A stretch of DNA of 64,000 nucleotides, taken from NCBI GenBank assembly GCA_964187785.1, contig OZ076415.1:6882001-6946000 (forward strand). Direction: 5' to 3'. The position numbers and the translations under genes were made by a program. The stretch is from Amphiscolops sp. MND2022. Lineage: Eukaryota. Shown here piece after piece: positions 3,082 to 54,949 of this stretch. The notes under the pieces were generated by a model that made no database searches, was not told the DNA's origin, and saw only the letters and a program-made list of their open reading frames with translations. How positions within the stretch are numbered: position 1 is the first letter of the stretch; each line of letters begins with the position of its first letter.

Positions 3082-3134
3082 CGGCTCGCTCCGCAATTTC
3101 AAATTTGCCTCTCCTCCTCTCTTCTTTGCAGCTC

Positions 3135-4426: not shown

Positions 4427-4651
4427 TGTGACACTGGTAACGACATGTGTCAATCCAGCAGATGCCAGCGAACAAACCTAATGAACTAAATGGCATAAAA
4501 CTACCAGTCAATGGCCTTATGTTGAAGTCATGTAACCACTATACATATATAACTTGTCTAGATATACTACAGTCGCGTTGATCCAAGCTAACTTACAATT
4601 GAGCTACTTTATTTTAATTCATTCTTAGAGCACCTTACTCTGTCTACTTTA
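4427..4651 (+). repeat. 5' LTR of Gypsy A
   Basis: TGTGAC...CTACTTTA, 96% identical to 25305-25529. Confidence 0.95.
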
Positions 4652-4667: not shown

Positions 4668-7600
4668 TTGAACAAAATAATGGACAACAACAACACCAAC
4701 CTTAACCTAACGGAGGGTGAACCGAACACATTGGAGCGATCAACCAGAATGAACAACAATCAAACAACAACGTCAGAACGGATGGAAAAGACTAAATACA
4801 AAATTCCGATTTTATCGGACAGGGACACGGACCTCACAAAAATCAACCCCAAAATGTGGTGGGAGCAGATCGCGGAGTACATCCATCTGACATACAACCG
4901 TAACCGAGACGAAATCATCGATGAAGGAACAGAGTACCTGGATCCACACACAGTTTACCACATTAAAGGTGATGTCATTTGGGCACTTGGCCCAAAAGCG
5001 AAACACGAAATCATGAGAGGCCAATGGGGCCGTGAACTGAAAGATGTGAACCTATTCGAATTACCGACTTATTCAAGAAGACCTTCCTTCCTGCGAGAAA
5101 TGTATTTCACAGTAGAGCACAATTTTTCAACTGAAGCAGGAGGATAGTGAAACACTTGACGAATATTGGAAAAGATTAGTGGACACCGAACGAAAATGCG
5201 ATTTGGGCACCATCACAGCGGAAGAAATCATTACATACAAATTTGCATCAACAATTAAAGACAAAAGAGCCCGCGACAAATTCATAAAGGGCCCACTGAA
5301 ATAACAACTGGTCCTAGATACTATAGAACTTGACAACTACAACCGGAAATACGGGGACAAGAGACCGAAAAGCAAAAAAGCCAGAAAAGATTCATCAAAC
5401 AGCTCAAATTCTACCGAATTGATTGGACACACCAACCAACCGTGGAAACGCAAAACAAATTTTACCGAGAAGAAAAAGTTTTCAAACCGCAATTGCCGCT
5501 TTTGCGGAAAACCAAACTGCTCAATGGAGCACATTTGTCCGGCACGGAAGGCTCAGTGCAACAACTGTAAGAAGATGGGACATTTCGCCAAGGTGTGCAA
5601 ATCCAAAACCGTCAGCCGGATAAAAGAGATAGCTTCATCGGACAGCAGCACCGAGCCATGGCCGGAGATTGATCATATCCAGTCCGTCATCGGAGTGAAC
5701 CGTGTTGATTTCTACAAAACAATCCTATTGGTCGACGGCTAACCAATAGAATTTATCATTGATACCGGCTCACCCGTGACGATCGTACCTCCAATAATCA
5801 CACCAAAAGAATCAAAGAAAACGACAAAAACTTTCGTCGATGTGAACAAAAATCCCATCAAATTTAAGGGTGAGGCCATGGTCGAAGTGAAAACGGAGAA
5901 AAGTAAAGAAATACTGCCTATCCTTATCACAGAGAACAAAAATACACAACTAATATTGGGATTGGACTGCCTGGATAAACTGGAAATCGGGTTACAGGGC
6001 AGCAAAAAGACGAACGTGATCCGCCATGTAGAAGAAAATGAGAGACGAAAGAAAATTATCAGCGAACACGACGATCTATTTAAAAGTAACCATACCATAA
6101 AAGATCTAACGATTGACAACCAATTAAAGAAGGACATCAAACCTATTCAACAAAAGGGACGGCCTGTTCCTATACACTTTCAAAACAATGTCCGGGAGGA
6201 ATTAGAGGAACTTATCAAATCGGGACATATCGAGAAGGCTGATGAAATTACAGAAAATTTTTTCATTTCCCCTGCAGTCATCACCATCAAAAAAGACAAA
6301 TCTGTCAAAATTGCGTTGGATTCAAGAAAGCTTAACGAAGCATGCATAAAACGAAAAGCCGCAATGCCAAATATGGAAGAGCTAATCAGTAAAATCTCTG
6401 CCAAGATAACTAATGGCGAAGGCGAAATCTGGATGTCGAAGATAGACTTAGACTACGCCTACAGTCAGGCAAGACTGTCTAAAGAAGCAGCTAGACACTG
6501 CTTATCGACGGAGACTTTACCGGTCACTATCGCTTCAAGAAAGGCTTTTACGGATTATCAGATATCCCAACGGTGTTCCAGGAACACATTGACGGTGTAC
6601 TAGAATACAAAATCCCAGTTTGGCTCGATGATATTATTTGCGTGACTAACGGCAGTATCGAAGATCACGAGAAAGAGATACGAGAAGTCCTTATGAAACT
6701 GCAGAACGCCGGCTACCGAGCTAGCGAAAAAAAGACGGAACTGTTCAAGAAAGAACTAACCTGGCTCGGCTATTTCATCAATCAAAGCGGCGTGAAGCCA
6801 AATAAAGATAAAACTGAAGCGATAACCAAATTAGCCGCACCGAAGAATGTAAAGGAATTAAAATCTTTCCTGAGCTCCATTCAACAACAATTCAACAACA
6901 ATTCAACAACAATTTTCTCGAAGAAAACCTATCGAATGATGAAATTACTTGAAGAAAGACGTCAAATGGGTGTGGACTGCAGAAGTAAATGATGATTTTG
7001 AAAAACTGAAGAAGGAGAGTACTGAAGCCCCATGCCTGGCCCATTTTGACCCAAAAAGGGACAATTATATTACAACTGACGCTTGCAACACTGGACTGGG
7101 TGCGACCTTATGGCAAAAAGAAGGTGTAGTATTTAGACCCGTAGCTTTTGACAGTAGATTTTTAACTGATTGCGAAAAAAAATACGCAATAAATGAACTA
7201 GAACTTTTTGGAGCCTTATGGGGATTAGAACATTTCAGGTATTACGTTTACGGTAAGAGAGTAAGTTTGTTGACAGATCACCAAGCAGTACAACCATTAC
7301 TGAAAAAGAACCGGGCACATAAACAATATAGCGCACGCTTAACTTGTTGGTTGGATAGGCTGAGCCATTGTGATGTTAATATTCAGTACACGGCCGGCAA
7401 AAACATTCCGCCAACGGATTACCTAAGCCGTCATCCGATCGTACCGACCGAAATCGCCGAGCTAGAAAACAAAGCGGACGGACCAAACGAAGCGGAAGCC
7501 GACAAGGATTTCGTCGTCAATCAAATATACGGCTTATTTGAGTTCAACCGAGAGCGAGGAAGCATAAAACGATTCATCGAACAACTAAACACGAGAGAAA

Positions 7601-9678
7601 ATCTCGACCAATCACATCGCGACAAAAACGTACGTGAACAAAATTCAAAAACTCATTTGTGCAAAACCTCAACGCCGTCAATTAGCATTAACGCCATAAA
7701 CCGCAAAGTACCAAATTCGAAAATGGACAAAGCTAATGGTTTCGATATGAATTTCAGATACAAGAAAAGAGGTCACTCCCCGGAAACCAAACGCTTATGG
7801 ATAGAGCGAAAGCACTTACTGAAGCCAGACCGGACACGAATTGTCGGAAAAGGAAAGGAGAGTGAGCGGATACAAAAATACCGGCCAAACCAAGCCAGCA
7901 GAAAGAGGATAGTAGAACTCAATGTCGAGATCTGCAACCGCTTCTTCCATTTCTGTGAAACAATTGGGACGACACCCTTGTTGGAGTACCAACAGAATAA
8001 CAATGAATCCTGGCTACACAACAACCAGCCGGACTAAACAAGAAAAATGCTTTGAAGAAGTTTAAGAAACACGAAACCGTGAACTTGATCAGACTTAAGC
8101 AGACGGCGAAGAAAAACTTGCTCAGTGCAGATCAAAATGACAACACCGAAGATGCCATCAAAAGAGTGGAAAAGGATTTCGCGCTAGATCTTCCCCTCCT
8201 CGTAGATGAAACAGCGCGAGACATAAAAATACTCAACGCAATTGCTGCCATTGAAAACCAACAACTGGACAGCATATTTTATCCTTACCGTCAATATCGA
8301 GCACACCTGTCCACAAGATTCGGGCTGTTGTTCTACAACGACAAGATAATGATTCCAGAGAATATGCGGACAACATTAATCGCTATGTTGCATCACGGAC
8401 ACGCGTCGGCCGGATAGATGGAACAATTAACAGGAGCCTTCTGGTGGCCAGGAATGAACCGCAAGGTTCAGGAGAAGGCCGAATTATGCCCAAGCTGTAG
8501 GGCTGCAGGTAAGAACATTATCACTCAAATCCCGTCCACGGAGAAAAATAACCTAGAGATTTTAACCGAACCGAACCAAGAAATTCAATTGGACTTCGCC
8601 GGTCCAATCAAATCGAAAACACAAGGCGATGTATATATTTTAGTAGCCATTGACCGTTTTAGCAAATGGCCGACCGCACACAGTTGTAAAAGCACCGTCC
8701 TAAAATTTTTAACGAAATATTTTACCGACAACGGAACGCCACGGAATATTGGAACCGATAACGGCAGTTGTATTAAAAGTAACGAATTTAACCAATTTTG
8801 CGACGGTCAAAATATTAAACGTATAAGGTGCACGCCAAATTTACACACCGGTACCGGTTTAGTCGAACGAGCCATACGGACAATTAAATCATTTACTAGA
8901 GCAAACATGGCAGACGGCCTAACCTTTGAAGATAGCGTCCGATTAGCGATTAAAACAATTAGACAGACGCCACACAGCAGATTGAAAACGACACCTTTTC
9001 AGATGCATATAGGCAGAAAGCCGCGCACAGCTCTAACTAATCTGATAGATAAGCCAGAAAGTTTGCTATCTAATTGGAAGAAGACATTAGTTATATTTCA
9101 GCCCAACCGACAGAACTTCAAGTAGTCATCATAAATGATGCAGAAGGAGAGATGGTGGACTACTTGGTCCTCAACGAAACAAAGAAAAAAGGCCGTTCGG
9201 TAAGCCGGGATTTTAAAAATTACTAGTTCTACGAAAAGGAAAACAAACCGAACTCTATGAAATGTGGTTTTAAAACAAATAAAATTTTAACAAGGGGTAG
9301 CTGAAACAGGACACACAATAACCACTTCCGAAGGGAAGGTAATACATAAAAAATTAGCATCAAGGCCCCTGAATTTTCAGACATCAAAAAAGCCCCAGGA
9401 TCAGCGAAGACCAACAAACAGGTGCAGCAGATGTGGGAAATTCAGTAGCGGCGAATTATGTGAAACACATCTACGTCTCGAGGCCACTAATCAAGATGAC
9501 AACAATAATGAACCAGGCACCAGCCACACCACCATGCCGACCTTGCCAGCGAAAAAGAAACGGGCGTACAACCGTGTGGTGATGTACGACTCTTCTAGCC
9601 GTGATTCGGAATCAACAAGCAACTACGCCGACAGAGCTACCTCAGAAGAGGAAGATGCCACCGATGACATCACCATTA
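4668..9678 (+). pseudogene. Gypsy A gag-pol, decayed (Zn knuckles, aspartic protease, RT, RNase H, integrase)
   Basis: CRFCG..HIC..CNNCKKMGHFAKVC; IDTGSPVT; IDLDYAYSQ; WLDDII; TTDACNTGLGA..ELE; QLDFAGP, TDNGS. Many stops and frameshifts. Confidence 0.93.
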
Positions 9679-9719
9679 CAGTGCCAAAAGTGGGTTAACA
9701 CACTTTTGTGCTATTAAGT

Positions 9720-10105
9720 CACCGAAATCCACTGACATACTTTTAAACATGTATTTCACTGATTTTCATTGGATTCCGCTGTTGCCTGTTTTGGATTCCA
9801 CTAACATATCTAGCTAATGTACAAAAATGTGTGCACCGAAATCCACTGCTTTTCACTGCCAACTGATTGGACCAATCGCGTCAGCTTATTTCAACTTTCA
9901 GCGAAATTCGCTGAAACTTGCAGTGGATTCCACTTCAGCTTACAGTGGATTCCACTTTGGCTTACAGTCGATTCCACTTTGGCCTACAGCCGATTCCACT
10001 TTTCAACTTGTGGAATTGACTGCGAAACGAGTGGAATTGACTGTAAGCGAAAGTTGAATTCACTGTAAGCTGAAGTGGAATCCACTGCAAGTTTCAGCGA
10101 AAGGA
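9720..10105. repeat. E1 left subterminal region: GTGGAWTCCAC palindromic motifs and a fold-back
   Basis: Many (CA)GTGGATTCCAC(TG) variants. Arms ttcgctgaaacttgcagtggattccacttcagcttacagtg (~9907) and its reverse complement ending at ~10100. Confidence 0.8.
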
Positions 10106-10254
10106 CAGATCAGTGAAACATAAATATAAAATTTCTAATAATCTTCTTGCATTTTTCATGCTGAAACCTTTTGGCCGTTTAGTTTTGTCCCCCCTCCCCA
10201 CACCTGATTTAACAACTTATATATATTTATTATTATTATTAATTTGTTATGCAG

Positions 10255-12502
10255 GAACGGCTAGTTTCTGTTGGTTTAGGAGGTGGAAGCCTAGTACCGT
10301 CAATTCGTCACATCAAAAGAGCTACTAGCCTCATAATGAAATTGTTTGTTACAATTTGCGAGCCTGAGCGAACCTATTCTGGCTTTCGAGTCAGTTTACT
10401 GAAAGCAGTGACGTTTGCGTCATTAGTTTTACTGCAAAAAACCAATCTTGAAGGCCTTAAATTGATATTTGGGGTGACGGTTGCGAAATAGGGGGGGTGA
10501 GGTAACGCGTCTAGCATTCAGAATTTTGAACACCAAAGTTAGCAGCCAATCATCGAAAGCTGTCTTCTGTTTTGCATCATATCGTGGCAAAGATGGCCGA
10601 TATGCAATGGAACAAAATTTTGGCCTGTCTATCCTGGGTAAGCAAGAATCTGGATGGCTATACCGCCAGACAAAAGAACTACAAGCCTTGGGCGTTGAAA
10701 TTACATACAGTGGTGACAGCCCGTTCTTGACGCGTTTGGTCCTTGGAATTTCAACTGAACGTTCAAGTTCTCATCCGTCACAACTTCCGATATATGTATG
10801 CGATGAAAATTTCATCCCCACCCGCTGCTCAGATGTCGATGGAAGACGAACATCTTTGAAGATCCCATTCAGACAACATGTTCCTAGAGAAGCATTAGCA
10901 AGCATAATCGATGTCAGAACAATCTGCCCAGACGCTACACACATGATAACGCGTTGCACGGAGAATGATATTAGAAAAGTGGCTCAGAAGGTAATTGACG
11001 ACAAACATCCCTGGGAAACTTTGAGCATACAGCGCTTTGAGAAAAATTTGACCAGCCGAGAAGCTAAAAGACCGTCTTTTCAGTTCAATATCACCCACAA
11101 GAACGTAGGTAAAACCCCAGGAACAGTAGGACCACTGTCATTAGCGGGGTCGAATGCACTTACAGTTATAACCGAAACAGAAGAACTTAGAAGTGCTCAA
11201 TTTGGGACCATCACGAACCTTTATGACGGAGTTTGGACGACCGAGATACTACTTGGAAGAGAGGATGGATACAACTTGGGGGCTGCAAAAGTACTTAAGT
11301 CTTTATATCCACATTTATTTGACAAACGAGACCCCATAAATCCAAGAAACGAAGAAAGATATATATCAATTTATGACGCTTGTGAGCTTCTACGACAAAG
11401 TTTAAACCAGTGTGCTATTCTGTTGAGAACTCAGGGAACATTTGATGTCGACACTTACAAACGATGGGCTGAAACATACTTTCAAATCAATTTGCTCCTC
11501 TTCGGGCGAAAGGGGCTGTCACCATACAAGCTCAAGCTTCCATTGATAGCCCAACTAGTGGAGAGCGGATACATCGAGAAGCCATGGAATCACCTCTGCG
11601 AAGGCTTGGAAAAATCGAACCACAATGCGAACAGAAATTTTCAATCCCGAACCATGAGAGGCGGTGGCTCCATTTACCATCAAGATCCATTATTTCTGGA
11701 TACTGCATTTTCGTTTTGCCGGTTCCTGGATATTTCTTCAACAAGTTCCGAAAAAAAAATATCCAATGTCATTGAACATGTAAGAAAAACACTCACGACT
11801 GAAGAGACTTTAGAGGGTGCCAAAACTTATCTAGACATTTGTAGAACTCCCTTGGCGCTACCCTGCCTTGCCGTTGGCGAAAAGAGAGAATTTTGCGACC
11901 TTCTACGAGGATTGAGATTTACAATTGTAGGTAGGTTCAAGCGTGGGCTCACACAGGATTTCCTCAAAGATAGAATTTCCGAAATGGGAGGTGTCGTTTA
12001 TGAGAAAGAAAACGCGGAGAACATAATGAAATCCCATTCAAATATCTTGAATTTTTACGTTATTGTCAAAGACGAAGAGGACCTAATAAACGCGACCGGC
12101 GATAAACATCAATTGGAAGCCATGAGAAGAAAACTGAAGCTCCATAGACATTGTACCGCAAGCGAGTTGTCAACAGACGCCGAAAGCAGAGAAGATGAAA
12201 AGTGTTCAACAAAAAAGAATTTGTCTCCTGCAGCTTTGGCCTGCAAAAGATTTGCGTCGGGGGGTTTCATGTTCATCACTGTTGAATACGTACTCGAAAT
12301 GATGAAAAGTAACGTCATTCTGGACCCTGAAAATTATATTATAAGGCCTGGACTCTTGATCAACCCGATGAAAATTAATGACATGCGACCACTCTTGATG
12401 GATCAAATAGATGATAACAAATCAATAGCGAATACGTCAGCCATTGTGGCCTTGAAAAGATACCGAAACGGCCTAGTGAAACAACAAAACTCCAGCAGAT
12501 GA
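10255..12502 (+). CDS. RAG1/Transib-like DDE transposase with C-terminal BRCT domain (~750 aa after correcting two 1-bp homopolymer deletions)
   Basis: Reconstructed LKIDIWGDGCEIGG (D at 10476), TYSGDSPFL..LG (D at 10715), ICPDATHMITR, GLSPY..., CEGLEKSNH..F..RT.RGGG (E at 11609), matching RAG1 motifs GYDEK, IDALH and SEGNESGN. BRCT: GLRFTIVG..LKDRISEMGGVV ... ITVEYVLEMMKSNVILDPENYII. Frameshifts at 10459-61 and 10491-97. Confidence 0.75.
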
Positions 12503-12635
12503 TTGACTTTTACTCTGATTTCTGCAAATGCTTGTTACAATAAATGATTTTGAAGACATATGTTTTAATCTTTGCTTGTGGTACTAATTTAGCTTTTGAA
12601 CATTTTTTTCTCGGAAACTTAGACAAAAAATCTTA

Positions 12636-13220
12636 AGCATTTTACACCAAATCAAAAGGGGTACATTCAGTAAAGCATTAGTTCTAAATAGACTTTATTG
12701 CAGTGGATTCCACTATTCTGGAAAGTGTTCTTCATCCTGCGAAAAGCGATATGCGGAATTGACTAACATATACCAATACATTGACAGTGGATTCCACAAA
12801 CAAATGCTTAAACATTTGCAAACCAATACGAAAGGGGTACATTCATTAAGCATTAGTTCTAAATAGACTTTATTGCAGTGGATTCCACTATTCTGGAAAG
12901 TGTTCTTCATCCTGCGAAAAGCGATATGCGGAATTGACTAACATATACCAATACATTGACAGTGGATTCCACAAACAAATGCTTAAACATTTGCAAACCA
13001 ATTCAAAAGGGGTACATTCAGTGAATTATTAGTTCTAAATAGACTCAAGTTCCTATTGCAGTGGATTCCACTATTCTGGAAAGTATTCTTCATCCTGCGA
13101 AAAGCCATATGCGGAATTGACTAACATATACCAATACCTTGACAGTGGATTCCACAAACAAATGCTTAAACATTTGCAAACCAATTCAAAAGTGGTACAT
13201 TCAGTGAATTATTAGTATAT
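12636..13220 (+). repeat. Tandem array of a 175-183-bp unit (~3.3 copies)
   Basis: ggtacattc recurs at 12661, 12837, 13012 and 13195; each unit holds two CAGTGGATTCCAC motifs. Confidence 0.9.
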
Positions 13221-14120
13221 CCAGCAAAAAAAAATCAAATCAGGCTGCATTGAATAAAATTGACAATTAACTCCCTCATAGTCGTGACGAAAGAAATCTT
13301 GAACAAAGTTAATGATCAAAATCAACATACCGTATTTTCCAGCAAAGAAGCCACCTCCCCTTTTTTTGAATTTTTGGTGGTCAAAAGTTTGGGGAGGGGG
13401 CTTATACGATGAACATAAAACAAAGACCGTTTTTTTTCGGAATCAAAAATTTGGCATGATTTTAGAGGACAGTGCAGTTGATTTTTTTGAGGAAGTTTCA
13501 GAGCCTAAAGAAATGACAGATGATGACTCCACTTTTAGTCCGTGAGAATTGAAAATTGAATTTATACCAAGAAAGTTCATTCAATTGACTCTTATTGAAC
13601 TTTATTTTATTTTTTTTCCGAAGTGCATTTCCAAAAATTTTGGTAGGTTAAAATTTGAGTCATTTTGTCTTCTAGAAGGAGTTAGTCTCTTTCCGTTTTT
13701 CATTTTGCTTCAATAATTTGTTTACCATTCATTTGTTGAACACTATTCGTTCACTCAGCACAATTGGAATGAATCTGACGAAAGTGTCAATTTAGTAAAC
13801 TTGTGTGCAAATGAAGTGGTATAAAACAAAACTGTTACATAAGTTTACGGAACCGAGAATGCTTATTCGATTTTGATTGGCTGCCGAAGTGGATGTAGGA
13901 AATGTTCTTCTAGTTCAGGAAATTGATTCTTTGTCGTTCGACCTTTCAATTCAACAGCTTGCTAGTTTTGTTTAATTCAAGATACATTCTTTAAGCCTTC
14001 CTCTTACCTTTGTCTAATTCTAGATTCCCTATACGTTGCCTGCTACTTCATTCCACAATGGTTAGTTTCTTTCTTAAGAATGTTTTTCATCTCTAATTTG
14101 GGATACGAAATAAAAATTTC

Positions 14121-14575
14121 AGTTTCAGTTGGAAAAAAATTGAGTAACCACTGTGAGTATAAAAAAACAGTTTTAATATACACCGCTTTGGTTTTGGTAC
14201 TTACCAAGAGTAAGTTATTGTACTCGTTTTTGGTACCCACCGTGAGTAAAGTATTATCCTGCATTTGTATAGAAATTTTTTGTATCCACCGTGAGTAGTG
14301 GAAAAAACCTTGGTTAGAAACAAAATTTGTACACACTGTCAGCAAAAATGTTAGTTTCAGTTGGAAAAATTCGAGTATCCACCGTGAGCAAAAAAACTCA
14401 GTTTTAATAAACACCGCTTTGGTTTTGGTACTTACCTTGAGTAAATTATTGTACTCGTTTTTGGTACACACGGTGGGTAAAGTATTGTCCTGCATTTGTA
14501 TAGAAATTTTTTGTATCCACCGTGAGTAGTGGAAAAATCTGAGTTAGAAAAAAACTGTACACACTGTCAGCAAAA
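14121..14575 (+). repeat. Direct repeat, 2 x ~232 bp
   Basis: agtttcagttggaaaaa...cacactgtcagcaaaa starting at 14121 and 14353; rich in the motif tatccaccgtgag. Confidence 0.85.
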
Positions 14576-15224
14576 CTGCTCTTGAATTTTCATACGACGT
14601 TTTTGGTTTCCCCCGTGTAGTAAAAACAAATCTGAGTTTGAACTGCCATCTTCTTTGAACAGGCCTGAGTGAAAAACTGTTCACAATTTGCAGAGAAATC
14701 TGGGAGTGAAATATTGTTATCGATTTTGTGGGTCTTTTCTGCTACAACCCCTCCCCCCCTCCCAGCAAGTTTACTCCCATCCCACTCAATTCACTAAGAA
14801 GTGAATCAATATAAAGTCAATCTTATACAACAATTCTTGTCCTAATTTTTGAAATGTTGATAGGTGTTCATTATTGAGAAGTGAATCATTAGAGAGTGAG
14901 TCAAATACCTCGATTCTTATCCTGACAAAAAATATATTGGGGGTAATTTTTAAAGAATAGAGAGGGGGAAAACTATCTCGTTTTAAGGGAAAGCAATCCA
15001 TTACTCATGTCAAAGACCAATTTTTTTTGATACTCAACTGTTGTCAGATGAAATCAGAAAGCAATGATACGATATGAAGAAAAGATTAAAAGTTGTTGTT
15101 AACATAGACTATCAAACTAAATTTCGCGATAGCAAGATCAAAGTTTTTACATATTATTTGAAAAATTAGGTATACTCAGTTTTTCTGAGATAACATAGGC
15201 TGTAAAAAGTCCACTGTAAAAAGT

Positions 15225-15296
15225 CGACACGATAGAGATTCGAACCCACGATCTATGGCTTCATAGTCTAATTGCTTACCACTCGGCCATAGCGCG
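15225..15296 (-). pseudogene. tRNA-derived sequence (pseudo-tRNA or SINE head)
   Basis: A box TGGCCGAGTGG, B box GGTTCGAATC, tRNA-like spacing, followed by T runs. Anticodon and acceptor stems do not pair properly. Confidence 0.65.
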
Positions 15297-15558
15297 TTGT
15301 TATTTGTTTGTTTTTATTTAACCATATTGTTAAACAACCGAGATAATTATCTCCATTTTAAAATGATGGCGTTCTAAATTCATTTGTGGTTTGGCATGTT
15401 CTGTTTTTTTTCGCTTGTTCGTTTCCTTTTTTTCTGATTGGAAAAACAGGTCTTTATTTGAAATGGGAGGTTGTAAAATCTTTTAGCGGTTTGAAATTTT
15501 GGCGTGTACAAGTAAGACGCTTCGAGGATAAACTATAATGTTGTTTTTGTTTCTACAG

Positions 15559-18526
15559 ACTGAATACAGCTGCCCCAACTGTTCGTACAAGTCGAACCGC
15601 CGCACGAATTTTGAGAGGCACCAAAAAACCTGCGGTACAAAGCAGCCGCAAAACAAAGCCTGTCCCCGTTGCAAGAGAGTCTTCGCCACCCTTGTAACGC
15701 TCAAGCGGCACATCAAAAAAGCGAGGTACTGCACGACAGACATACCCCAAAATGAACGAAAGTACAGTAAGTACATCAACTATGTCAACGACTTGCGGCT
15801 CTTTTTGTTCCCCCCACCACATTTTTCATGAAAAAATAGTGAAAAACTTATATCACAAAGACGTGAATACAAACCAGAAAGCCTCAAATTTATATTTATT
15901 TTTAGTGTGACAGTTTAGGATTTAGATACAAATAATTACGAACATAATACAAACATAATACGAACATAAGTATTGTCTGCAAGTTTTATATAATCTGCGT
16001 TCGTTAGTTTACATTTTATTCAGTAAAATTTTATAGGAACTGCCAACCCCAGCAAGAAATATCCTTGCACATCATGTAGTGAGGAATTTGCCCGGAGTGA
16101 CTCCCTGCAGAGACACCTGGAACGATTTCCCCTCCACAAAGAAAGCGACATGGCAATGACGAGCGAGCCTAGTCGACGGGCGTACGAAGGGTCAAGTCTC
16201 TTCGTAAAGTACCTAGAGGACATGCCGCTATCAGAGGAGCCCTGGAACTGCTGCAGGTGGGCAAATCAGCAGGAAGATGAAAACGGCATGGTCCTGAAAG
16301 CACTCTCTCGTGGCCAGCCGATTTTGTGGAAGAACGGGGCTATGCACACGCGAGGTTTGAAGCTCCCAGTTTTGCCCGCTGAGGACTTCGTCCACCAAGT
16401 GGAGTTCTTGCTGCAGCACTTGGCTAATCCTGCAGCGAAGCTTGCTGTAAAGTCATCACGGCTGCCACAAGACCAACAGGTGAACATATCCCGCCATTCT
16501 TTGTATTTTTCGAATTTCACAAACTTCATTCAAGTATAGCGTTTTACCATTAGTGATAAAATTTATTGTATACATTGAATCAAAACATAGTGAGCTTTAG
16601 TATCCACTAAGTCGTCGTTGGCAGTGGATTTCACTGTAAGTTATCTAAACATTGGTAAAGTAATTTCAAAGGATTATGATTGAAATATATTTTTCTGAAC
16701 TTTAGGTCAGGTCTTTAACAGTGAGAGAGTACCTGGATGAGCAGCGAGCGGGGCCCTCAGTAGCACCCACGGGAACATTTCCTGTCAATGTCATTGACAT
16801 TGCACTCGAACGGAATGTATGTTTTTTTATCATATCTTGAAAGGGCTCATATTGGAAAAAATTACTCTTTGAATTTGGTGTCTTTACAGTGCCAAAAGTT
16901 AGTGAAATACATGATGCACCCTTCTATTGTTCAAATTTTTAGCAACTAAATGGATGTTGAAAATGGCGACCACTGTAAGGAGTCTTTGTTCTGAAACCGT
17001 TTGCTGAGGTCTTGTCGTTTTGGTTTAGTTTTTCCAAGTACCGGATTTCGTCAGACACTGTGCGGCCGATCATCTGGCAGATGAGTGTGTGGATGCAGCA
17101 GGGCACTTCACCGAGGCTACATCCAATTATTTGCTGGTCTCAAACGACCAGTGTCTCACGCCGTGGCATGTCGACTTCTCCAGCACGACTGCCTTCTATA
17201 CTGTCGCCCGAGGACAGAAGATCTTCTGGCTGGTGGAGCGACAAGCTCAAATTTGCAGCTCTTTGAGGAGTGGAGCAATATCCCCACAAAAAGGTAAATG
17301 TACTCAGATCATGTACTGAAAACATACTCATCTCAAAGTCATCATTTTGCGAAGAGCACATTATCAATCATGCACATGATTCAAAATCATTGAACCAGTT
17401 GTTTCGTTTATATTTATACTAATTTGTTTTTATTTAGACCAACTTCCTTCGGGAACCTGAAGGCGCTGACAGGTGGGGTCCACAAACTTGTGGTGGAAGC
17501 AGGCGACATCCTCGTTTTGCCTGCACGCTGGCCACATATAGTGGCAACAAAGGGAGACGCCATTGCTTTTGCCTCCAACATCCTCGCTGTCACACATTTC
17601 CCTCTGATTGTGGACAGTCACCTCCACGCCAGTCAGCAGGAAATAGACGACGAAGAGGTTTTTCCCGGAGTTGTTCGTGTGTATGCTGTGCTACAGTTTA
17701 AAATACGACAACTCCAGCGAAAACTCAATTCCCTGAGCGGAACATGGAGCCCCCTCTTCTCCAGCCCACAACTGACTCTTCTGAAAGAGCAGATCAGCAG
17801 TGAGCTCGACGCCATCAAAATGGTAATCAATGTTTGTTAATTATGAATGGTAACTGATAATGTAGAAAAAAGAACTAATCTCTTCCACGGTCTGGGATGT
17901 GAACTACGGATTTTAATGGTTCTCGTTTCGAACTGCCTAACAATGTAAACGTATTTTTTCAAATGTAATTGTAATTTTGCACTTTTCTCATTGAATTCGC
18001 TCTATTTTATCATTGTCAATGGCTTTTGTTACCAGGTGTATCCAGCGTTCAATTTAAAGCAAATGGGATTGAGGGGTCCGGAGAAGCCCTATTGCGACCC
18101 AAAAGGGCCAGTGTACGCCTTCACAGGGACTGTGAAGGAAGTCCGAATTGGGCCTACACACCAGGTTGAAATCCCCGAAATGTCACAGAAGGGAAAGAAA
18201 TATGACCGCAGCATCCTTCAAAAGGAGGAGGACGTCTTCGATATAGGTTAGGAGCTGCAATTGTTGATGTCATAATTTTCGAAATCTTGATATTAAACCT
18301 TACATAGATATTTGACCACTAGTCTATAGGAAAACCTTGAAATTGCATCTGTTGAAAAAAAATCACAAACCCCATCGTTATGATCTGTTTAGACACCCTG
18401 CCGCCTCTCATTGCAAACTGCGACACTTTCAAAGAGTTTTTGAGCAAGAAAATTGCTCTCTACAAGCTGGCTTTTGCAACGAGCCTACATTGCAAAAGAA
18501 GCCTCGAGAAAAATTCACTATGGTGA
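15559..18526 (+). CDS. Multi-exon C2H2 zinc finger + JmjC (KDM2/KDM7-like) + ELM2-like protein; start codon not located
   Basis: GT-AG exons 15559-15766 (2 ZnF), 16037-16479 (ZnF), 16706-~16815 (FPVNVID), ~17039-17293 (TPWHVDFSSTTAFY..RGQKIFWLV), 17438-17822 (LPARWPHIV, third Fe ligand His), 18036-18246 (VRIGPTHQVEIP) and 18393-18526 (IALYKLA). Phases are compatible except across 16815-17039. Two 1-bp deletions at 16750-52 and 17239. Confidence 0.8.
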
Positions 18527-18627
18527 ATAAAGAAGCTGCCTGGAGCAAACTTTTATAGTTCATTATTTTTTTATCAAACTCTTTAGTTTAGAATTGAACA
18601 GAATTTAGTTTAGAATTTACTCCTTTA

Positions 18628-19255
18628 TATTGGTTTGCAAATGTTCGAGCATTTGTTTGTAGAAATCACTTTTAATGGATTGAAATACGTCTGTCGATTC
18701 CGCATATCGCTTTTCGCAGGATGAAGAATTTTTTCTAGAATAATGGAATCCACTGCAATAGAAACTTGAGTCTATTTAGAACTAATAATTTACTGAATGT
18801 ACCCCTTTTGGATTGGTTTGCAAATGCTTAAGAATTTGTTCGTGGAATCCACTGTCAATGTATTGGTATATGTTAGTCAATTCCGCATATCGCTTTTCGC
18901 AGGATGAAGAATACTTTCCAGAATAGTGGAATCCACTGCAATAGAAACTTGAGTCTATTTAGAACTAATAATTCACTGAATGTACCCCTTTTGAATTGGT
19001 TTGCAAATGTTTAAGCATTTGTTTGTGGAATCCACTGTCAATGTATTGGTATATGTTAGTCAATTCCGCATATCGCTTTTCGCAGGATGAAGAACACTTT
19101 CCAGAATAGTGGAATCCACTGCAATATAAACTTGGGTCTATTTAGAACTAGTAATTCACTGATGTACCCCTTTTGTATTGGTTTGCAAATGTTTAAGCAT
19201 TTGTTTGTGGAATCCACTGTCAATGTATTGGTATACGTTAGTCAAATCCACTTAC
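18628..19255 (-). repeat. Inverted copy of the 175-183-bp tandem array (~3.4 copies)
   Basis: gtacccc at 18799, 18982 and 19164; reverse complement of the 12636-13220 units. Confidence 0.9.
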
Positions 19256-19651
19256 TGTTTCTGGCTAGATGCATTTAGGTTTAGTAGAACGTTTGTACCA
19301 TAAATCTGAATGTGCAAAAACCAAAGTAACAAAGCATTATTACGTATCGGGAACAGTTCTGAATAATAATTTGAAATTATCTACTGGGGAGAATTTTTCA
19401 AGAAAGTAGTCGCAAGTGAAAAAAGTTTTTTGACATCATTTATTGTAACAAAGACAAAATTACTGTAACAATCGAATTAAGAAAAAGAACTTTATCAGTG
19501 CAATACCAACAAAAATACCATTCAATTTATTTAGGGTAACAAAACAGACGCATTTTGAAGATGTATTTGCACATTTACTCACGGTGGATACCAAAATTGC
19601 TACCCCTATTGGTCAACAAAGTATTCAATGTGCGCATGTTGAATGTTTTGC

Positions 19652-20902
19652 CTAAAGCGTTGTCGATGGTCTCCATTTTTTGTAGTGGCCTTCAGTTGTA
19701 GTTATGTGGCACCTGAATGAGAACATCATAAAGTCACGATGTTCCGTGAATTTCAAAGTCTTGATCAATGTTGCAGGCTCATCTTCAAGTGTATCTGGAA
19801 TGATGTCCCAGTTCTGGCCCAATATAAAATCTAAGCTGTTGTAGCTTCCCAAGTTTCCCGTTTCAACTTCTATTGAAAATTTCACGTTTTCTCTGCTTGA
19901 GTCCGACTTGAACCCACAGATACGTTTTGTGAGCTCTGTTGCAGGTATCATGTTTGTCACAGTTGATGATTTCTTGAACGACAAGCCAACACATCTCTTA
20001 ATTGCAGAAAAGACTGCAAACGTTCTATCAACATCATTATCAAGAGTGAAAAAATTGATTTCCACGTTTTTTAAATATTCCGAGATCTTTAACGAACAAT
20101 TGTTTACTGGCATCCTAAGTTCGCAGTCTTCGTCGTCCATGGATACCATTATTGCAAAAGGTTTCAACTTCTGTGCACTGTAGTACAAATCCTTCACTTT
20201 GAATTCCATTCCAGACAAAGTAATAATGGATCCTCTTTGACAAATTCCATTGACACATGGTACAAAGCTTAATTTGACATCAACATCGGTTTGCGGTATC
20301 AATGCTGAAAAGTCTATTTCTGGTATTTGTGTTTTAGGTCTTTTCTGTTTTGGTTCCTGCCTCGTCTCTTCAGCTTCCTCGTCGTCTTCTGCTTTCTCAT
20401 CGTGAACATGGGTTTCTTCCACTGAGTTCTTCAAATAGCAATAGGGGATAAATCTAAACATTTCGTCCACCTCCACGACACACTCATGGGTAAATGGGTC
20501 ATTCGTCGAAATAGTTCCCGTTTTGATTTTTCTATGGGAATCAATAAAACAATGCCCCACACACTCACAATCGGGTAGCCAGAATGTCACATGCTCGTTT
20601 TTTTGCAGTCGGTTTGGGTTATACGACAGGGGTTTAGAACGCTTTTTCGACATGACTGGTTGTGAATGTCGTGCTTTTCTAATGTTCCACCTGTTTGGGT
20701 CAGGACGCAATTCTAGGGGAATTTCAATTTTCTGCAGACGATTGTTCCAGTCGATCCATTGGATTTTCAGAGACCAATCACTTATGAACGCTATTATCTT
20801 CGCAGACTCCCAAATATAGGTTTCAGGGTCGAGGATTTGGACAGTTTCATTTATTTTAAAAGTTTGCAGAAGCATTGTAGTGGAGACTAAATTTGACTTC
20901 AA
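19652..20902 (-). CDS. 416-aa intronless protein with N-terminal Tudor/Royal-family-like domain(s)
   Basis: Uninterrupted ORF. INETVQILDPETYIWESAKII..SLKIQWIDW resembles a Tudor/Agenet barrel with aromatic-cage residues; possible second barrel (EHVTFW..KTGTI..CVVEVD). C-terminal half unassigned. Confidence 0.6.
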   Translation of the reverse strand: MKSNLVSTTMLLQTFKINETVQILDPETYIWESAKIIAFISDWSLKIQWIDWNNRLQKIEIPLELRPDPNRWNIRKARHSQPVMSKKRSKPLSYNPNRLQKNEHVTFWLPDCECVGHCFIDSHRKIKTGTISTNDPFTHECVVEVDEMFRFIPYCYLKNSVEETHVHDEKAEDDEEAEETRQEPKQKRPKTQIPEIDFSALIPQTDVDVKLSFVPCVNGICQRGSIITLSGMEFKVKDLYYSAQKLKPFAIMVSMDDEDCELRMPVNNCSLKISEYLKNVEINFFTLDNDVDRTFAVFSAIKRCVGLSFKKSSTVTNMIPATELTKRICGFKSDSSRENVKFSIEVETGNLGSYNSLDFILGQNWDIIPDTLEDEPATLIKTLKFTEHRDFMMFSFRCHITTTEGHYKKWRPSTTL

Positions 20903-21299
20903 CAGAAAGAAACACTTGAGCTTACTCTGTGCATAAACTGTTCAAATTTGTGCAAAGTGATTACCAGGTGTCAACGCATAAACTGCGCGAAAAAGAGGCT
21001 AATTTTACGGTGATGATCCTAAAAGAAGGTGTCATTCCATTTTGAGCGCTCAATAAAAGAAATTATCACTAGCAATTAGTTTTTAAACTCATCTCGTGAG
21101 TGTTAATATCTTTGAATAGGCAATTGAGTCCCGAAAGGACTCAACCACCGTAATAAACCTGATAACACTTACTGGTTGAAATTATTAATTTAGTCACTGT
21201 GAAATGCAATGGGTGAAATCGAGTCTCTGCTAATTATGAAAACGACGATTTATCGAAAAAATTAATTACAAAATTGTCATTTCTTTTTACATCATAATT

Positions 21300-23282
21300 T
21301 TGATTCACTCAGCGAAATCCACCGTCAAGATTTGTACTCCTAGTTTCATGAATACTTCTAGCATGCCTGACAAAATTTCAAATCTCGAATCGACACACTT
21401 GTGTCCATCCCAGACTTTTACACCTGTGCAACAGTCACATCGACGATCTACCGACTGGAATGTGCCGCCAGATTTCCTCAGCAATACATCCATATTTTGT
21501 CCGCCATCTTATTCGCCAATTCCATCGGCCCCCGAGGAGGGTTTCTTCAGTGCAACTAGAATGATGAACTCTGATGGGATCGAGCACTTGATTGAACATA
21601 CGCCCACAGACGCTCTAGAACATTTACTGCAGAATGCTCACAATCTGACTCATATTCCTTTGCCGCCTGAGAACCCACTACAACAGGACCCCCCGTCACA
21701 GAATTCACTGCCTCACCAGAACTTGCCACCCCAGAGCAATGTGCCCGGGACCAATGCGTCACCCCAGCTCAATGAGCCACCCGGGAAGCGTCCATTTGAC
21801 TCCCAGTGCAGTGAGGATAATTTAAGTAACAGCCAATCCAAATGTGCGAAAGTTACTTACTTTGACAACAACATGTACGAAAGAACGTTGGCTAAACATG
21901 TGCAGGCATCGAAAGAAAATGTGGGACTAGTACAAAAAGCTAAGTTGGAACTCTTTCGATGCATAATTACAACCCTGTTCAAGTTTGCGGTACCACCTAT
22001 GCTTGAAAGTTCCATCCGAAATGTCTCGGTACACTCAGTTGTGCAAATCGTGATGGATCACGAAGAAGATTCACTGAGCGACGCTTTCAATCTCTGTGTG
22101 GAACACACAATTGGATCATCGGAACGAACAGTTCACAAAGTATCCGGAAGTCTTGTTGAAGCATTGAAAGTATATTTTACACAAATTCGGCCATTTTTTG
22201 TTACCAATCACGCCAAGTTAGCCATTGTTCGATACGAAAAGGCCGACAAACGTCCAATTAATACAGAGTTATTCTTCGTGAATTCAATTGGTAAAACGGA
22301 CTTCCGCGTTAAATCTGTTGTAGATCTTTTCATTTCAAGCAAAAAAGCAGAAACAAAAGATCAATATACATTGAAAGGTAAAGTCGCGGAACTGATGCCC
22401 CTTTCCAATGACCCATGCTTCAAAATCGCCAAGCTGAAACATGCAGTGAATTTGGTTCTTTCGAATGTTGAAGGTTTCGACAAAGACGTTGTGAGAAACG
22501 CTGTTCGCGGCCGCCAAGACCAGCAAAGGTACACTCGCCAGTCAGCCAGGGCCTTGCTATACTTTGAACACGTTTCTGGGAAAGTTGCTATTAACTGTCT
22601 TGAGTCAAGAGCGGCGGCATTTTTTCAGCGACAAAAGTGGACTTCGCTGAAGGATAAGAACCAGGACGTGAAAAAAGTGACAGCGCAGTTATTGATTCTC
22701 TCTAACAACCAGTCAATTAGAAAATCTTCGCAGGTACCTGAGAACAGTGGAATTCGGTATGCTGGACTTGCTCATAATTTGCCATATGAAGAACAAATTT
22801 TGCTGTCGCAACGATGTGAGACGCAGCTGTGGCCTGGAATCTGCTTAGCCAAAATGTCAAAATTTGGGAGATGTGTGATTGCTACACAGAAATTTTCAAA
22901 AGACGACATTTTGATGGATTATCATGGCGAGGTGTCTTTGAACATGTCATTGAGCCAAGTCCTCGAGAAAGAAGGCGTGGAGCAAGAGTTCGTTCTGGAG
23001 GTTAAAAGTGGCGCCTCTAGAAGAATCATTGATGCCTCCAAAGAGATTTGCCCCCTTCACCCAAATATTCGCTGCCCTGGACGTCTTGCCAACCACTCGC
23101 AGTTGAAATCAAACGGCGCCAACATGAAGCCCACAGTGATCGAATTGTTTCAAAATGGCAAAAAGATTGTAGTGTTCCGAGCTACACGTGATATTCTACC
23201 ATTTGAGCAGCTCCGTTTTGATTACAATGACCCCATTGCCAATCAACTTTTCCAGGAAGATTCTCAACCAATTTTTGACTGA
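21300..23282 (+). CDS. 660-aa intronless protein: P/S/Q-rich N-terminus, degenerate tyrosine-recombinase-like domain, C-terminal PR-Set7/KMT5A-like SET domain
   Basis: SET: FGRCVIATQKFSKDDILMDYHG..IIDAS..GRLANHS..FRATRDILPFEQLRFDY. Middle region follows the YR motif order (LKVYFTQIRP, LFFVNSIGK, KLKHAV, QQRY) without the catalytic R/K/H residues. Confidence 0.8.
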   Translation: MIHSAKSTVKICTPSFMNTSSMPDKISNLESTHLCPSQTFTPVQQSHRRSTDWNVPPDFLSNTSIFCPPSYSPIPSAPEEGFFSATRMMNSDGIEHLIEHTPTDALEHLLQNAHNLTHIPLPPENPLQQDPPSQNSLPHQNLPPQSNVPGTNASPQLNEPPGKRPFDSQCSEDNLSNSQSKCAKVTYFDNNMYERTLAKHVQASKENVGLVQKAKLELFRCIITTLFKFAVPPMLESSIRNVSVHSVVQIVMDHEEDSLSDAFNLCVEHTIGSSERTVHKVSGSLVEALKVYFTQIRPFFVTNHAKLAIVRYEKADKRPINTELFFVNSIGKTDFRVKSVVDLFISSKKAETKDQYTLKGKVAELMPLSNDPCFKIAKLKHAVNLVLSNVEGFDKDVVRNAVRGRQDQQRYTRQSARALLYFEHVSGKVAINCLESRAAAFFQRQKWTSLKDKNQDVKKVTAQLLILSNNQSIRKSSQVPENSGIRYAGLAHNLPYEEQILLSQRCETQLWPGICLAKMSKFGRCVIATQKFSKDDILMDYHGEVSLNMSLSQVLEKEGVEQEFVLEVKSGASRRIIDASKEICPLHPNIRCPGRLANHSQLKSNGANMKPTVIELFQNGKKIVVFRATRDILPFEQLRFDYNDPIANQLFQEDSQPIFD

Positions 23283-23785
23283 TGGAATCGTCAGAAAACT
23301 CCGTTTACGAAACACTTTTTGTTGTTGTGTATTCAATTTTTCACTACTTTCGTTTTAATTTCACTTGTAATTAAACACTGATTGCTACAAGTACAAATGT
23401 TCGTTTTTCGTAATATCGAAACAAAACACCGTAAATAACGTCTTTCCCTTGCAACGTCTTCTTCACTCGAATTTAGATTTCCATTCATCATTCGACTTGT
23501 AATTCAATTTGAAATTTTGGTATCCGCCTTGAGGTATTTGAAAAATGGAAACTAGTTGTACCTAAAATACACTAAAATACACGAAAGAGCTGTGTGTGAA
23601 CTTTGATGTAGAATTGATAAGGTCTCCGTTGCAGTCAGCAGTATGCTTGAAGTGAGTTTTCCGGAACCAAATTTTGGTATCCACCATGAGGTAAATGAAA
23701 AATGAAAGCTAGTTATTTCTAAAGGTATGTGTGTATAACTAGGTAACTAGCAGGAACTGGGTGTGAAATTTTGATGCCCACTATG

Positions 23786-24520
23786 ATTCAGTGAAATAAT
23801 TCAGTGAAATAATTCAGTGAAATAATTCAGTGAAATAATTCAGTGAAATAATTCAATGAATTCCACCAAAACAATTGAAATAACTCAGTGAATTCAGGTA
23901 TTGAAAAAATTAGGTGAAATAATTAGGTGAAATAATTCAGTGAAATAATTCAGTGAAATAATTCAGTGAAATAATTCAGTGAATTCTACCAAAACATTTG
24001 AAATAACTCAGTGAATTCAGGTATTGAAAAAATTAGGTGAAATAATTAGGTGCAATAATTCAGTGAAATAATTCAGTGAAATAATTCAGTGAAAAAATTC
24101 AGTGAATTCTACCAAAACATTTGGAATAACTCAGTGAATTCAGGTATTGAAAAAATTAGGTGAAATATTTAGGTGAAATAATTCAGTGAAATAATTCAGT
24201 GAAATAATTCAGTGAAATAATTCAGTGAATTCTACCAAAACATTTGAAATAACTCAGTGAATTCAGGTATTGAAATAAAAAACTGAAATAATTAGGTGAA
24301 ATTATTCAGTGAAATAATTCAGTGAAATAATTCAGTGAAATAATTCAGTGAATTCTACCAAAACACTGCATTGGAAATAATTTTGTGAAATAATTCAGTG
24401 AATTCAGGTATTCAAATAATTCAGTGAAATAATTCAATGAAATAATTCAGTGAAATAATTCAGTGAATTCCACTAAAACACTGCAGTGGAAATAATTAGG
24501 TGAAATAATTCAGTGAATTC
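23786..24520 (+). repeat. 13-bp minisatellite (TTCAGTGAAATAA)n with higher-order ~115-bp blocks, E1 right subterminal region
   Basis: Dozens of direct copies, periodically interrupted by ttctaccaaaacatttgaaataactcagtgaattcaggtattg. Confidence 0.95.
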
Positions 24521-24830
24521 CACTAAAACACTGCAGTGGAGTCCACTGCAGCTGATAGTGGATTCCACAGCGGCTATCGGTGGAGTCCACTGCGGCCATC
24601 GGTGGAGTCCACTGCAGCGTTCAGTGGAATCCACAGCAGTGTTTTGTGGAATCCACTGCAAGATCCGAATGTTTAAGGTATTTGATAGTGGAATCCAATG
24701 CTTTGCAGCGAAATTCGCTGCAGAAAAATCGCCAAAAGAGTGGAATCGACTGCAACGTAATAGCATTTGTTAGTGGATTACGCTGCACGCTTTCCAAAAC
24801 TGCCGTCCAGCGAAATCCACTGCAAAAATT
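24521..24830. repeat. E1 right subterminal CAGTGGA(A/G)TCCACTG palindromes
   Basis: Repeated cagtggagtccactg / gtggaatccac motifs mirroring the left subterminal region. Confidence 0.8.
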
Positions 24831-24853
24831 CAAAATACCCACTTTTGGCACTG

Positions 24854-25176
24854 TAATGACACTGGAGGCCATGATCGGACAGGAAGTAGAGCGGATACGG
24901 TCGCAAACGCCGATGCTGACCTCTTCAATCGGCTGCAGCACTGAAATACCACAGGCCGCCGACGCGACACAACCGGACGCACTCGAAACGCCGATCCGCA
25001 GCCAAAGCACTTCAAACACTGAGGCAATAGACCATGACCACGCAGGTAAAGCACGGTTAAAACAAACCTTTAGCGATGAAAGTAGCTCACTAGATTTAAA
25101 TCAGGAGCCACGTAGATCCGAAAGGATAAGATCTGCAAAAAGAGTAGTTAAATTAGGCGGTGTCGAATACTTCTAA
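24854..25176 (+). pseudogene. C-terminal tail of Gypsy A pol, resuming after E1
   Basis: MTLEAMIGQEVERIR...EPRRSERIRSAKRVVKLGGVEYF*, in frame with the sequence before 9677; PPT AGAGGAGGGAA at 25294-25304. Confidence 0.85.
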
Positions 25177-25304: not shown

Positions 25305-25529
25305 TGTGACTCTGGTAACGACATGTGTCAATCCAACAGATGCCAACGATCAAACCTAATCAACTAAATGGCATAAAACTACCAGTCAATGGCCTTATGT
25401 TGAAGTCATGTAACCACTATACATATTTAACTTGTCTAGATATACTACAGTCGTGTTGATCCAAGCTAACTTACAATTGAGCTACTTTATTTTAATTCAT
25501 TCTTAGAGCACCTTCCTCAGTCTACTTTA
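25305..25529 (+). repeat. 3' LTR of Gypsy A
   Basis: Preceded by the PPT and followed by TSD GATGC. Confidence 0.95.
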
Positions 25530-54935: not shown

Positions 54936-54949
54936 AACTTACAAAGTAT

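Follow-up and report, generated by a model that had tools for sequence, protein, structure and literature searches.

A Multigene Transposon Family with Predicted Histone-Methylation Enzymes in Amphiscolops sp. MND2022

CACTA elements are large, multi-gene DNA transposons with subterminal repeat arrays. The wider CACTA-Mirage-Chapaev-Transib clade (CMC or CMCT) has 5'-CA..TG-3' termini, target-site duplications of 2-5 base pairs (bp), and a RAG1-like transposase (PMC12730594). Among other DNA transposons, Phytophthora HarbingerS and MuDR families are recorded as encoding a SET histone methyltransferase (Kojima and Jurka 2014, cited in PMC12730594), several fungal lineages stably carry TET/JBP dioxygenases, which have been read as a defense against silencing (PMC12730594), and the VANC proteins of VANDAL (MuDR) elements bind motif arrays in the element's noncoding DNA and undo silencing (PMC10398659). 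With SET known in Phytophthora and TET/JBP in fungi, a transposon that carries an epigenetic enzyme is not a new idea. The element described here lies in a 64,000-nucleotide stretch of the genome of Amphiscolops sp. MND2022 (contig OZ076415.1, positions 6,882,001 to 6,946,000; hereafter the window). Positions 9674-24858 of this window are a deletion-derived, nonautonomous copy of a young, multicopy family of cut-and-paste DNA transposons, with genes for a putative histone demethylase, a putative histone methyltransferase, and a third conserved protein alongside that for the transposase.

Element Boundaries and Copies

An earlier note on this DNA had delimited the element by perfect 17-bp inverted repeats (9679-9695 and 24837-24853) next to a duplicated TA. 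The repeat is indeed perfect, and it is longer than was proposed: complementarity extends without mismatch to 22 nucleotides (nt), including an outer CATTA/TAATG, and the supposed TA duplication falls inside it. The left repeat reads CATTACAGTGCCAAAAGTGGGT in the window and CATTACTGTGCC in most other copies; throughout the family the repeats are 22 bp, start with CATTAC, and finish with GTAATG. At every one of the ~18 ends examined CATTA stands directly 5' of C[A/T]GTGCC, the base before it being variable, and in the copies of ENA ERZ25074608 it directly precedes C[A/T]GTGCCAAAAGTGGGT at all ends.

The true duplication is a dinucleotide that is the same at both ends of each copy and differs between copies. 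It is present in eight of eight independent insertions, including the window (AC in the window and L007; TT in L008, L009, L013, and L014; TA in L010; CG in L011). Three loci were not counted as independent insertions: L012 has the flanks of L007, L001 has those of L013, and L006 is on the same contig as L014. In the window copy and L007 the match between flanks does not extend to three or more bases. Because the ends are 22 bp with AC duplicated outside them, the element is window 9674-24858 (15,185 bp). Excision of this segment plus one AC leaves a single open reading frame (ORF) of 232 amino acids (aa), in the integrase frame, from 9291 to 25173, so that the restoration of the host Gypsy pol frame noticed earlier is confirmed with the corrected ends. 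The TA-duplication model was rejected; the flanks of the eight insertions contradict it, and excision according to it gives only two shorter, overlapping ORFs.

The insertion point is in the C-terminal part of the pol ORF of a Gypsy retrotransposon with long terminal repeats (LTRs) of 225 bp that are 96% identical; its reverse transcriptase (RT), RNase H, and integrase lie at 6573-9125. Since both flanks belong to one degraded Gypsy element, the 15-kilobase (kb) segment is an insertion into a single older element. No paralogous Gypsy copy representing the empty site was found among the fetched loci.

Nine further copies, located through homologs of the internal ORFs, lie on other contigs of ENA ERZ25074608 (loci L001 and L005-L014) and match the window copy in gene order throughout. 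All copies are collinear with the window copy over their whole length; full-length copies measure 16.1-17.5 kb. One of them, L008, is an intact 17-kb copy with all ORFs intact; it is 96.3% identical to the window copy over the whole element, and the only large difference is a 1.9-kb deletion in the window copy. When JGI metagenome contigs were scanned for exact matches to both 22-bp repeats, none was found. The nine collinear copies, the perfect repeats, and the eight 2-bp duplications bear out the earlier proposal that the whole segment moved as one unit, and all copies share its structure, a copy lacking the additional genes being the sign of chance nesting that the note had named. We consider this structural part (one mobile unit with corrected ends and four conserved genes) highly probable.

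Clustering at 90% identity gives similar numbers of distinct sequences for ORF1 (77), ORF2 (76), and ORF3 (92), on many contigs. In their coding regions the copies differ from the consensus by 0.2-1%. This low coding divergence, together with the intact L008, shows the family to be young and perhaps still active.

The motif GGAWTCCAC occurs 37 times and is confined to four zones, namely both subterminal regions and two internal arrays (A and its inverted copy A') that bracket the JmjC gene (Table 1). Through the orientations of the arrays this gene comes to lie within what resembles an inner element without 22-bp repeats. Intron 2 of the same gene contains an end-like site that is kept in all copies covering the position (L001 and L005-L014); it may serve the transposase as a binding site, act as an alternative end, or be no more than a relic, and no clear equivalent was found in other lineages. 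A related element from another sample has an end-like 22-mer, CATTACAGGGCCAAAGGTGGGT, within the N-terminal coding region of its transposase (L002:1054-1075, minus strand); it encodes IPTFGPVM, the peptide obtained by read-through of the window's right end.

Encoded Proteins

The first gene, ORF1, survives in the window as a remnant in two frames. Measured against the 1,040-aa homolog P0001, residues 278-358 correspond to 10246-10485 and residues 361-1034 to 10493-12493 (the ORF as listed is 10481-12502), and the first ~277 residues are missing. Comparison with P0001 and L008 places a 1,922-bp deletion at ~10259, which removes an upstream region and ~256 N-terminal codons; a frameshift lies just after the DIWGDG motif, behind the first catalytic Asp. 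With its transposase lacking the N-terminus and shifted in frame, the window copy is nonautonomous, contrary to the earlier claim of an autonomous element, and the intact copy is L008.

There are 41 homologs of ORF1, up to 1,000-1,100 aa in length, and none has a Pfam domain except for a BRCT match in P0035. No Pfam transposase domain was found in ORF1 or in six full-length homologs, the only matches being weak ones to BRCT, in ORF1 itself and in P0017; likewise, a PDB sequence search with ORF1 gave no match, and the family profile finds no RAG1 or Transib chain. An AlphaFold model of P0001 was built from an 18-sequence alignment (mean predicted local distance difference test score [pLDDT] of 67). 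Foldseek matched it best to the RAG1 core (E = 6e-6, ~740 aligned columns), next to HzTransib (target TM-score up to 0.49), and then to the P element transposase and Hermes; the RAG1 and HzTransib matches have E-values of 6e-6 to 1e-3 and a probability of 1.0. Conserved acidic residues lie on predicted strand 1 (D351/D355), after strand 4 (D435), and on a helix (E730/E733), positions that fit a DDE core of the RNase H-like type. A large insertion, bordered by conserved Cys and His residues, separates the second Asp from the Glu. The Cys and His motifs read C505-x4-H510-x4-C515 and H727-x-C729; H510, H727, and C729 are conserved family-wide, and for C505 and C515 the reading comes only from P0001 and the consensus of the family. 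A probable C-terminal BRCT domain at ~11897-12091 has Pfam matches below the curated thresholds (E = 0.007 in the window and 5e-4 in P0017), with further hints from a precomputed PF16589 match (P0035) and from a modeled beta-alpha-beta topology. By its predicted fold, then, ORF1 is a DDE-type transposase with a RAG1/Transib-like core, and the transposase assignment of the earlier note is supported in the same way.

The second gene is predicted to be spliced, with at least five exons and in-frame GT..AG at each junction; its exons are 2.5% and its introns 3.9% diverged from those of L008. The product has two C2H2 fingers (Pfam zf-C2H2, 2e-8), a third, weaker finger, and a JmjC domain (Pfam 1e-3) that is closest to KDM2A (7e-6), PHF8, and Caenorhabditis elegans KDM7A (ceKDM7A; 1.7e-4). 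The motifs TPWHVDF..FY..RGQK and WPH align to these three proteins, with the HxD...H iron ligands and the 2-oxoglutarate-binding Thr, Tyr, and Lys in place. The product thus appears to be a KDM2/KDM7-type protein with intact ligands. It had been described as a C2H2-JmjC-ELM2 protein encoded with introns, and the fingers, the JmjC domain, and the predicted splicing stand; the ELM2-like C-terminal motif (E = 0.008, 17.4 bits compared with a cut-off of 21.7, first 22 of 53 profile positions), with a weak homologous match in a diverged relative (L019), is below the Pfam cut-off and is kept as a hint.

ORF2 is a conserved minus-strand ORF of 416 aa with no match to Pfam or to other families. The Tudor-like character proposed for it is a weak hint: its N-terminal ~80 aa have a Tudor-like pattern, and the family profile matches one 81-aa PDB chain (2ldm) at a best E-value of 0.25.

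ORF3 is predicted to comprise a disordered N-terminus, an alpha/beta domain of ~280 aa (aa ~190-470), and a KMT5A/SET8-like SET domain (aa ~495-645). The SET domain is recognized by Pfam (4.5e-9) and by Foldseek (SETD8, E = 7e-10, target TM-score 0.70-0.75), and FGRCV, RLANHS, and EQLRFDY align to SET8, supplying the GxG, NH, and ELxFDY motifs. The middle 280 aa are predicted with pLDDT >90, match no known family, and also precede the SET domain in relatives of 24-32% identity; a PDB fold search with ORF3 is dominated by SET matches. A tyrosine recombinase (YR), which the earlier note had placed in front of SET, was rejected after seven independent tests proved negative. No integrase match was found in Pfam, NCBIfam, or PHROGs, with ORF3 singly or across 26 relatives, nor in a PDB profile search or among the top 50 BFVD fold matches; hhalign against lambda Int gave a probability of 0.2%, and the alignment has no conserved R..HxxR..Y set. 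The protein thus joins a novel alpha/beta domain to a SET domain of the KMT5A/SET8 type.

Diverged Lineages and Competing Explanations

The loci of four more distant ORF1 homologs were searched with the window's proteins. All four genes were found in L016 (a different sample; ORF1 42-50% identical; 13.1 kb between its own repeats), in the order ORF3(-), ORF2(+), ORF1(+), JmjC(-), and in L019 (ORF1 35-38% identical), in the order ORF2(-), ORF1(+), ORF3(-), JmjC(-). Two further lineages, each with ORF1 47% identical to that of the window, carry ORF2(-), ORF3(+), and ORF1(+) in L003, and JmjC(+), ORF2(-), and ORF1(+) in L004. Order and orientation are thus shuffled across lineages and gene content is kept; the differing order fits rearrangement between internal inverted arrays. 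L019 is the farthest from the window copy for ORF1, ORF2, and ORF3. The HxD..H residues of JmjC are conserved in L004, L016, and L019, and the NH and DY of SET in L003, L016, and L019. Comparison of the window family with the nearest of its diverged relatives gives a ratio of nonsynonymous to synonymous substitution rates (dN/dS) of 0.25 for ORF3 (0.19 for SET and 0.21 for the middle domain) and 0.24 for ORF1. The first 11 bp of the terminal repeat, CATTACTGTGC, are common to the window family and L016, two lineages with a transposase identity of only 42%; the 22-bp repeats of L016 are its own and open with CATTACTGTGC, and its flanks, TT and TA, differ by one mismatch. Joint inheritance and purifying selection across such deeply diverged lineages argue that the chromatin genes are core genes and not captured cargo. 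By these comparisons they appear to be old, selected components of the transposon group, and the description of the three genes as cargo is accordingly given up, four other lineages carrying them, two in complete form. In L004 the JmjC exons are duplicated ~2.8 kb apart (39-603 and 2844-3408).

Several observations weigh on the other side. Element ends were not found in the L003, L004, and L019 loci, where tandem arrays mask short repeats, so that for these three the designation as the same element rests on proximity; the only end candidate among them is a right end at L003:18641-18651. JmjC was not found in L003, nor ORF3 in L004, within 23 kb each. One sequence used for the ORF3 dN/dS (L015) is a 2.5-kb contig without context. 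The likeness of ORF1 to RAG1 and Transib is one of fold only, from a model of moderate confidence, with PDB and Pfam profile searches empty. Within the family the ratio of nonsynonymous to synonymous differences (pN/pS) is 0.6-0.95, near neutral, which is expected of decaying copies and adds no support; between the window copy and L008, with uncorrected proportions, it is 0.29 for ORF1, 0.41 for ORF3, and 0.98 for ORF2, the last from 6 synonymous changes only.

As to mechanism, the element is of the cut-and-paste kind and integrates with a 2-bp stagger. Its transposase would bind the terminal repeats, and perhaps the motif arrays too, and would cut and paste the whole unit; the window copy could still move in trans through intact copies such as L008. 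The putative demethylase, guided by its zinc fingers, and the putative methyltransferase may alter histone lysine methylation, either on the element itself or at its target, in a way that favors the element, most likely by helping it to resist heterochromatic silencing. A KDM2/KDM7-type demethylase would then strip repressive or transcription-coupled marks over the element, a version suggested by analogy with VANC and with the fungal elements bearing TET/JBP (PMC10398659, PMC12730594). Editing of chromatin at the element's own locus, as the earlier note proposed, is plausible; the functional proposal that element-encoded proteins reset histone methylation is tentative, at somewhat less than an even chance. 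For the whole explanation, structure and function together, we estimate a probability of roughly 0.7.

The chromatin genes might instead serve transposition itself, with histone H4 lysine 20 (H4K20) methylation steering the repair of breaks or hairpins or marking chromatin for integration; the SET8-like protein would be the writer, the Tudor-like ORF2 the reader, the KDM7/PHF8-like protein the eraser, and BRCT the tie to the DNA-damage response. Cleavage of the RAG type depends on end-joining repair, PHF8 removes H4K20me1, and the Tudor domains of 53BP1 read H4K20 methylation at breaks. The nearest solved relatives of the SET domain are KMT5A/SET8, an H4K20 monomethylase, the JmjC domain is nearest to KDM2A, PHF8, and KDM7, and there are the BRCT hints at the transposase C-terminus. 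However, ~24% identity cannot reveal substrate specificity, the Tudor assignment is weak, and the BRCT matches are below threshold; we regard this explanation as unlikely, though worth ranking second, behind anti-silencing, as an account of what the genes do.

The remaining alternatives concern the structure and are far less probable. Chance nesting or recent capture of genes as passengers in a simple transposon would account for the placing of arrays A and A' on either side of the JmjC gene, as if they were the termini of a nested element, and for the end-like site within that gene; but the structure is common to all copies, the arrays share their motif with the element's own termini, and four lineages at 35-50% ORF1 identity carry homologs with catalytic residues conserved, with an ORF3 dN/dS indicating selection, which makes nesting or capture very improbable. 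A Crypton-like element, moved by a tyrosine recombinase in ORF3 with ORF1 as an accessory, is just as improbable: aa ~270-340 of ORF3 superficially resemble the hairpin-helix region of Xer-type recombinases, which probably gave rise to the earlier YR assignment, yet the integrase searches described above are negative, a conserved catalytic set is absent, and elements moved by tyrosine recombinases are not typified by inverted repeats with target duplications. The reading TA|CAGTGCC...GGCACTG|TA looks like the ends of Tc1, and a Tc1/mariner-type element that had acquired extra genes was considered on that ground; with CATTA inside the repeat at every end, a variable 2-bp duplication, no Tc1/mariner or other Pfam transposase domain, and a RAG1/Transib fold predicted for ORF1, it is the least probable of all. 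We retain the multigene cut-and-paste transposon with its own chromatin genes as the best explanation.

Window Features and Relation to Known Systems

The coordinates of the element and of its host are collected in Table 1. A 150-aa ORF on the minus strand at 14043-14495 was dismissed as an artifact of the ~232-bp repeat.

Table 1. Features of the transposon copy and its insertion site (window positions)
Feature	Position	Strand	Remarks
Host Gypsy LTR retrotransposon, degraded	4427-25529	+	LTRs 4427-4651 and 25305-25529
Left target-site duplication, AC	9672-9673		Identical to 24859-24860
Left 22-bp terminal inverted repeat	9674-9695	+	Perfect match to right end
Left subterminal region	9696-10258	+	7 GGAWTCCAC; 195-bp palindrome 9907-10101; ends at deletion breakpoint ~10259
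ORF1 remnant, RAG1/Transib-like DDE transposase (predicted fold)	10246-12502	+	Compared with 1,040-aa homolog P0001
Array A	12623-13216	+	~3.4 tandem units of ~175-183 bp; 12 GGAWTCCAC; left-end orientation
Two tandem copies of ~232-bp repeat	14112-14578		
Spliced C2H2/JmjC (KDM2/KDM7-like) gene, predicted	15538-18251	+	End assumes stop straight after exon 5
Proposed exons of JmjC gene	15538-15766, 16037-16479 (or to 16533), 17029-17312, 17438-17822, 18036-18248	+	GT..AG
Internal end-like site CTTTACAGTGCCAAAAGTTAGT	16882-16903	+	19 of 22 bases as in left repeat; JmjC intron 2
Array A', inverted copy of A	18613-19249	-	89-97% complementary to A; 11 GGAWTCCAC; right-end orientation
ORF2, conserved, matches no known family	19652-20902	-	416 aa; homologs start at MLLQTF Met near 20875
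ORF3, SET at C-terminus	21300-23282	+	660 aa; likely ATG at 21348
Array B	23783-24533		~123-bp tandem repeats, highly variable between copies
Right subterminal region	24534-24836		GGAWTCCAC motifs
Right 22-bp terminal inverted repeat	24837-24858	-	Perfect complement of left repeat
Right target-site duplication, AC	24859-24860		Identical to 9672-9673

Another gene cluster, on the minus strand at 39818-46532, differs from the first in sequence and has no ORF1-like transposase nearby. It contains a C2H2-like ORF (45537-46532), a JmjC HxD exon (45164-45451) that is 37-42% identical to exon 3 of the element, an internally repetitive ORF of 430 aa (42361-43650), an NHSCxPN-type SET domain (41782-42357, Pfam 1.4e-9), and three other ORFs, with arrays of a ~50-bp TTTCTATAGAAT repeat between genes (40854-40946, 44384-44478, and 46624-46963). 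The cluster could belong to the host or represent a further family of transposons that carry chromatin enzymes. A palindrome at 46965-47224, with 130-nt arms that are 98% complementary and have no spacer, adjoins the 50-bp repeat arrays. On the plus strand, 33320-36192 holds a SET ORF paralogous to that at 41782-42357 (40% aa identity); after it come a coding tandem repeat with a 36-bp unit (33688-34119), C2H2-like ORFs (34371-35152), and an ORF that shares 27% identity with 40382-40825. A fragment of an RT is found upstream, at 30869-31420. Elsewhere in the window are a direct duplication (49711-55044 and 58057-62784, ~7.7 kb spacing, 97-100% identical, with a 37-bp tandem array in each) just downstream of an N gap at 49561-49700, and a BEL/Pao retrotransposon fragment (RT, Peptidase_A17, integrase, and DUF5641) at 94-3081, which with the neighboring Gypsy element hints at an animal host. 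Searches of the window for tRNAs and Rfam families gave no match.

Copies of the element risk annotation as host histone-modifier genes. The recent copies and the intact L008 would allow a direct study of the ways in which a mobile element manipulates host chromatin or break repair. If the predicted fold is right, the transposase is a further, distant relative of RAG1/Transib in structure that makes 2-bp duplications and has a BRCT-like tail, and bears on the diversification of RAG-type recombinases and their link to chromatin readers.

The Tc1/mariner group has a ~340-aa DD(E/D) transposase with Pfam models and a TA duplication, neither of which is seen here. Transib and RAG1 provide the best structural matches of the ORF1 model and share with it a DDE core in which a large insertion sets the second Asp apart from the Glu. 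They differ in that Transib has a 5-bp duplication instead of 2 bp and a CAC-type recombination signal sequence heptamer instead of the CATTAC[A/T]GTGC found in two diverged lineages, in that one or two genes are present instead of four, and in the absence of similarity at the sequence level; the BRCT-like tail and the long motif arrays are features of the present element. The closest known group is the CMCT clade, which the element resembles in its CATTAC...GTAATG termini, its 2-bp duplication, and the RAG1-like predicted fold of its transposase, and, in the case of CACTA, in its large size, multiple genes, and subterminal repeat arrays. However, ORF1 does not match the Pfam families built on plant CACTA transposases, and the C(2)C and H(3-4)H motifs of the clade are not obviously present, the Cys and His residues of ORF1 being arranged as C505-x4-H510-x4-C515 and H727-x-C729.

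In the literature searched (Repbase and Dfam being outside its scope) there was no element with a set of JmjC, SET, and a partner, nor such a set conserved across a transposase lineage. The novelty of a CMCT-like DNA transposon with a fixed set of histone-methylation genes is provisional; that these elements form an undescribed superfamily-level group, related to Transib/RAG1 by fold only, with a methyltransferase, a demethylase, and a third chromatin-linked protein as obligate, co-inherited partners, we would put at a little under an even chance.

The Phytophthora HarbingerS and MuDR families share a SET gene with the present element; they belong to other superfamilies and to oomycete hosts, and no demethylase or third partner is reported for them. 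The fungal TET/JBP elements encode an Fe(II)/2-oxoglutarate dioxygenase, the enzyme class of JmjC, and this enzyme takes off an epigenetic methyl mark, but the substrate there is 5-methylcytosine and not methyl-lysine, the hosts are fungi, and the genes were acquired several times independently and are not a fixed set. VANDAL with its VANC proteins offers the closest parallel in function to a zinc-finger demethylase paired with motif arrays, which the element's own proteins may bind; VANC is not a histone-methylation enzyme, and the hosts are plants. Transposons are usually seen as targets of silencing, and the known exceptions have one gene each (SET in oomycetes, TET/JBP in fungi, and VANC in plants). 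In the Amphiscolops element a putative writer, a putative eraser, and a third protein appear to be fixed in the transposon and conserved about as strongly as the transposase, and, if this is true, a mobile element has kept its own system for writing and erasing histone methylation through tens of percent of protein divergence.

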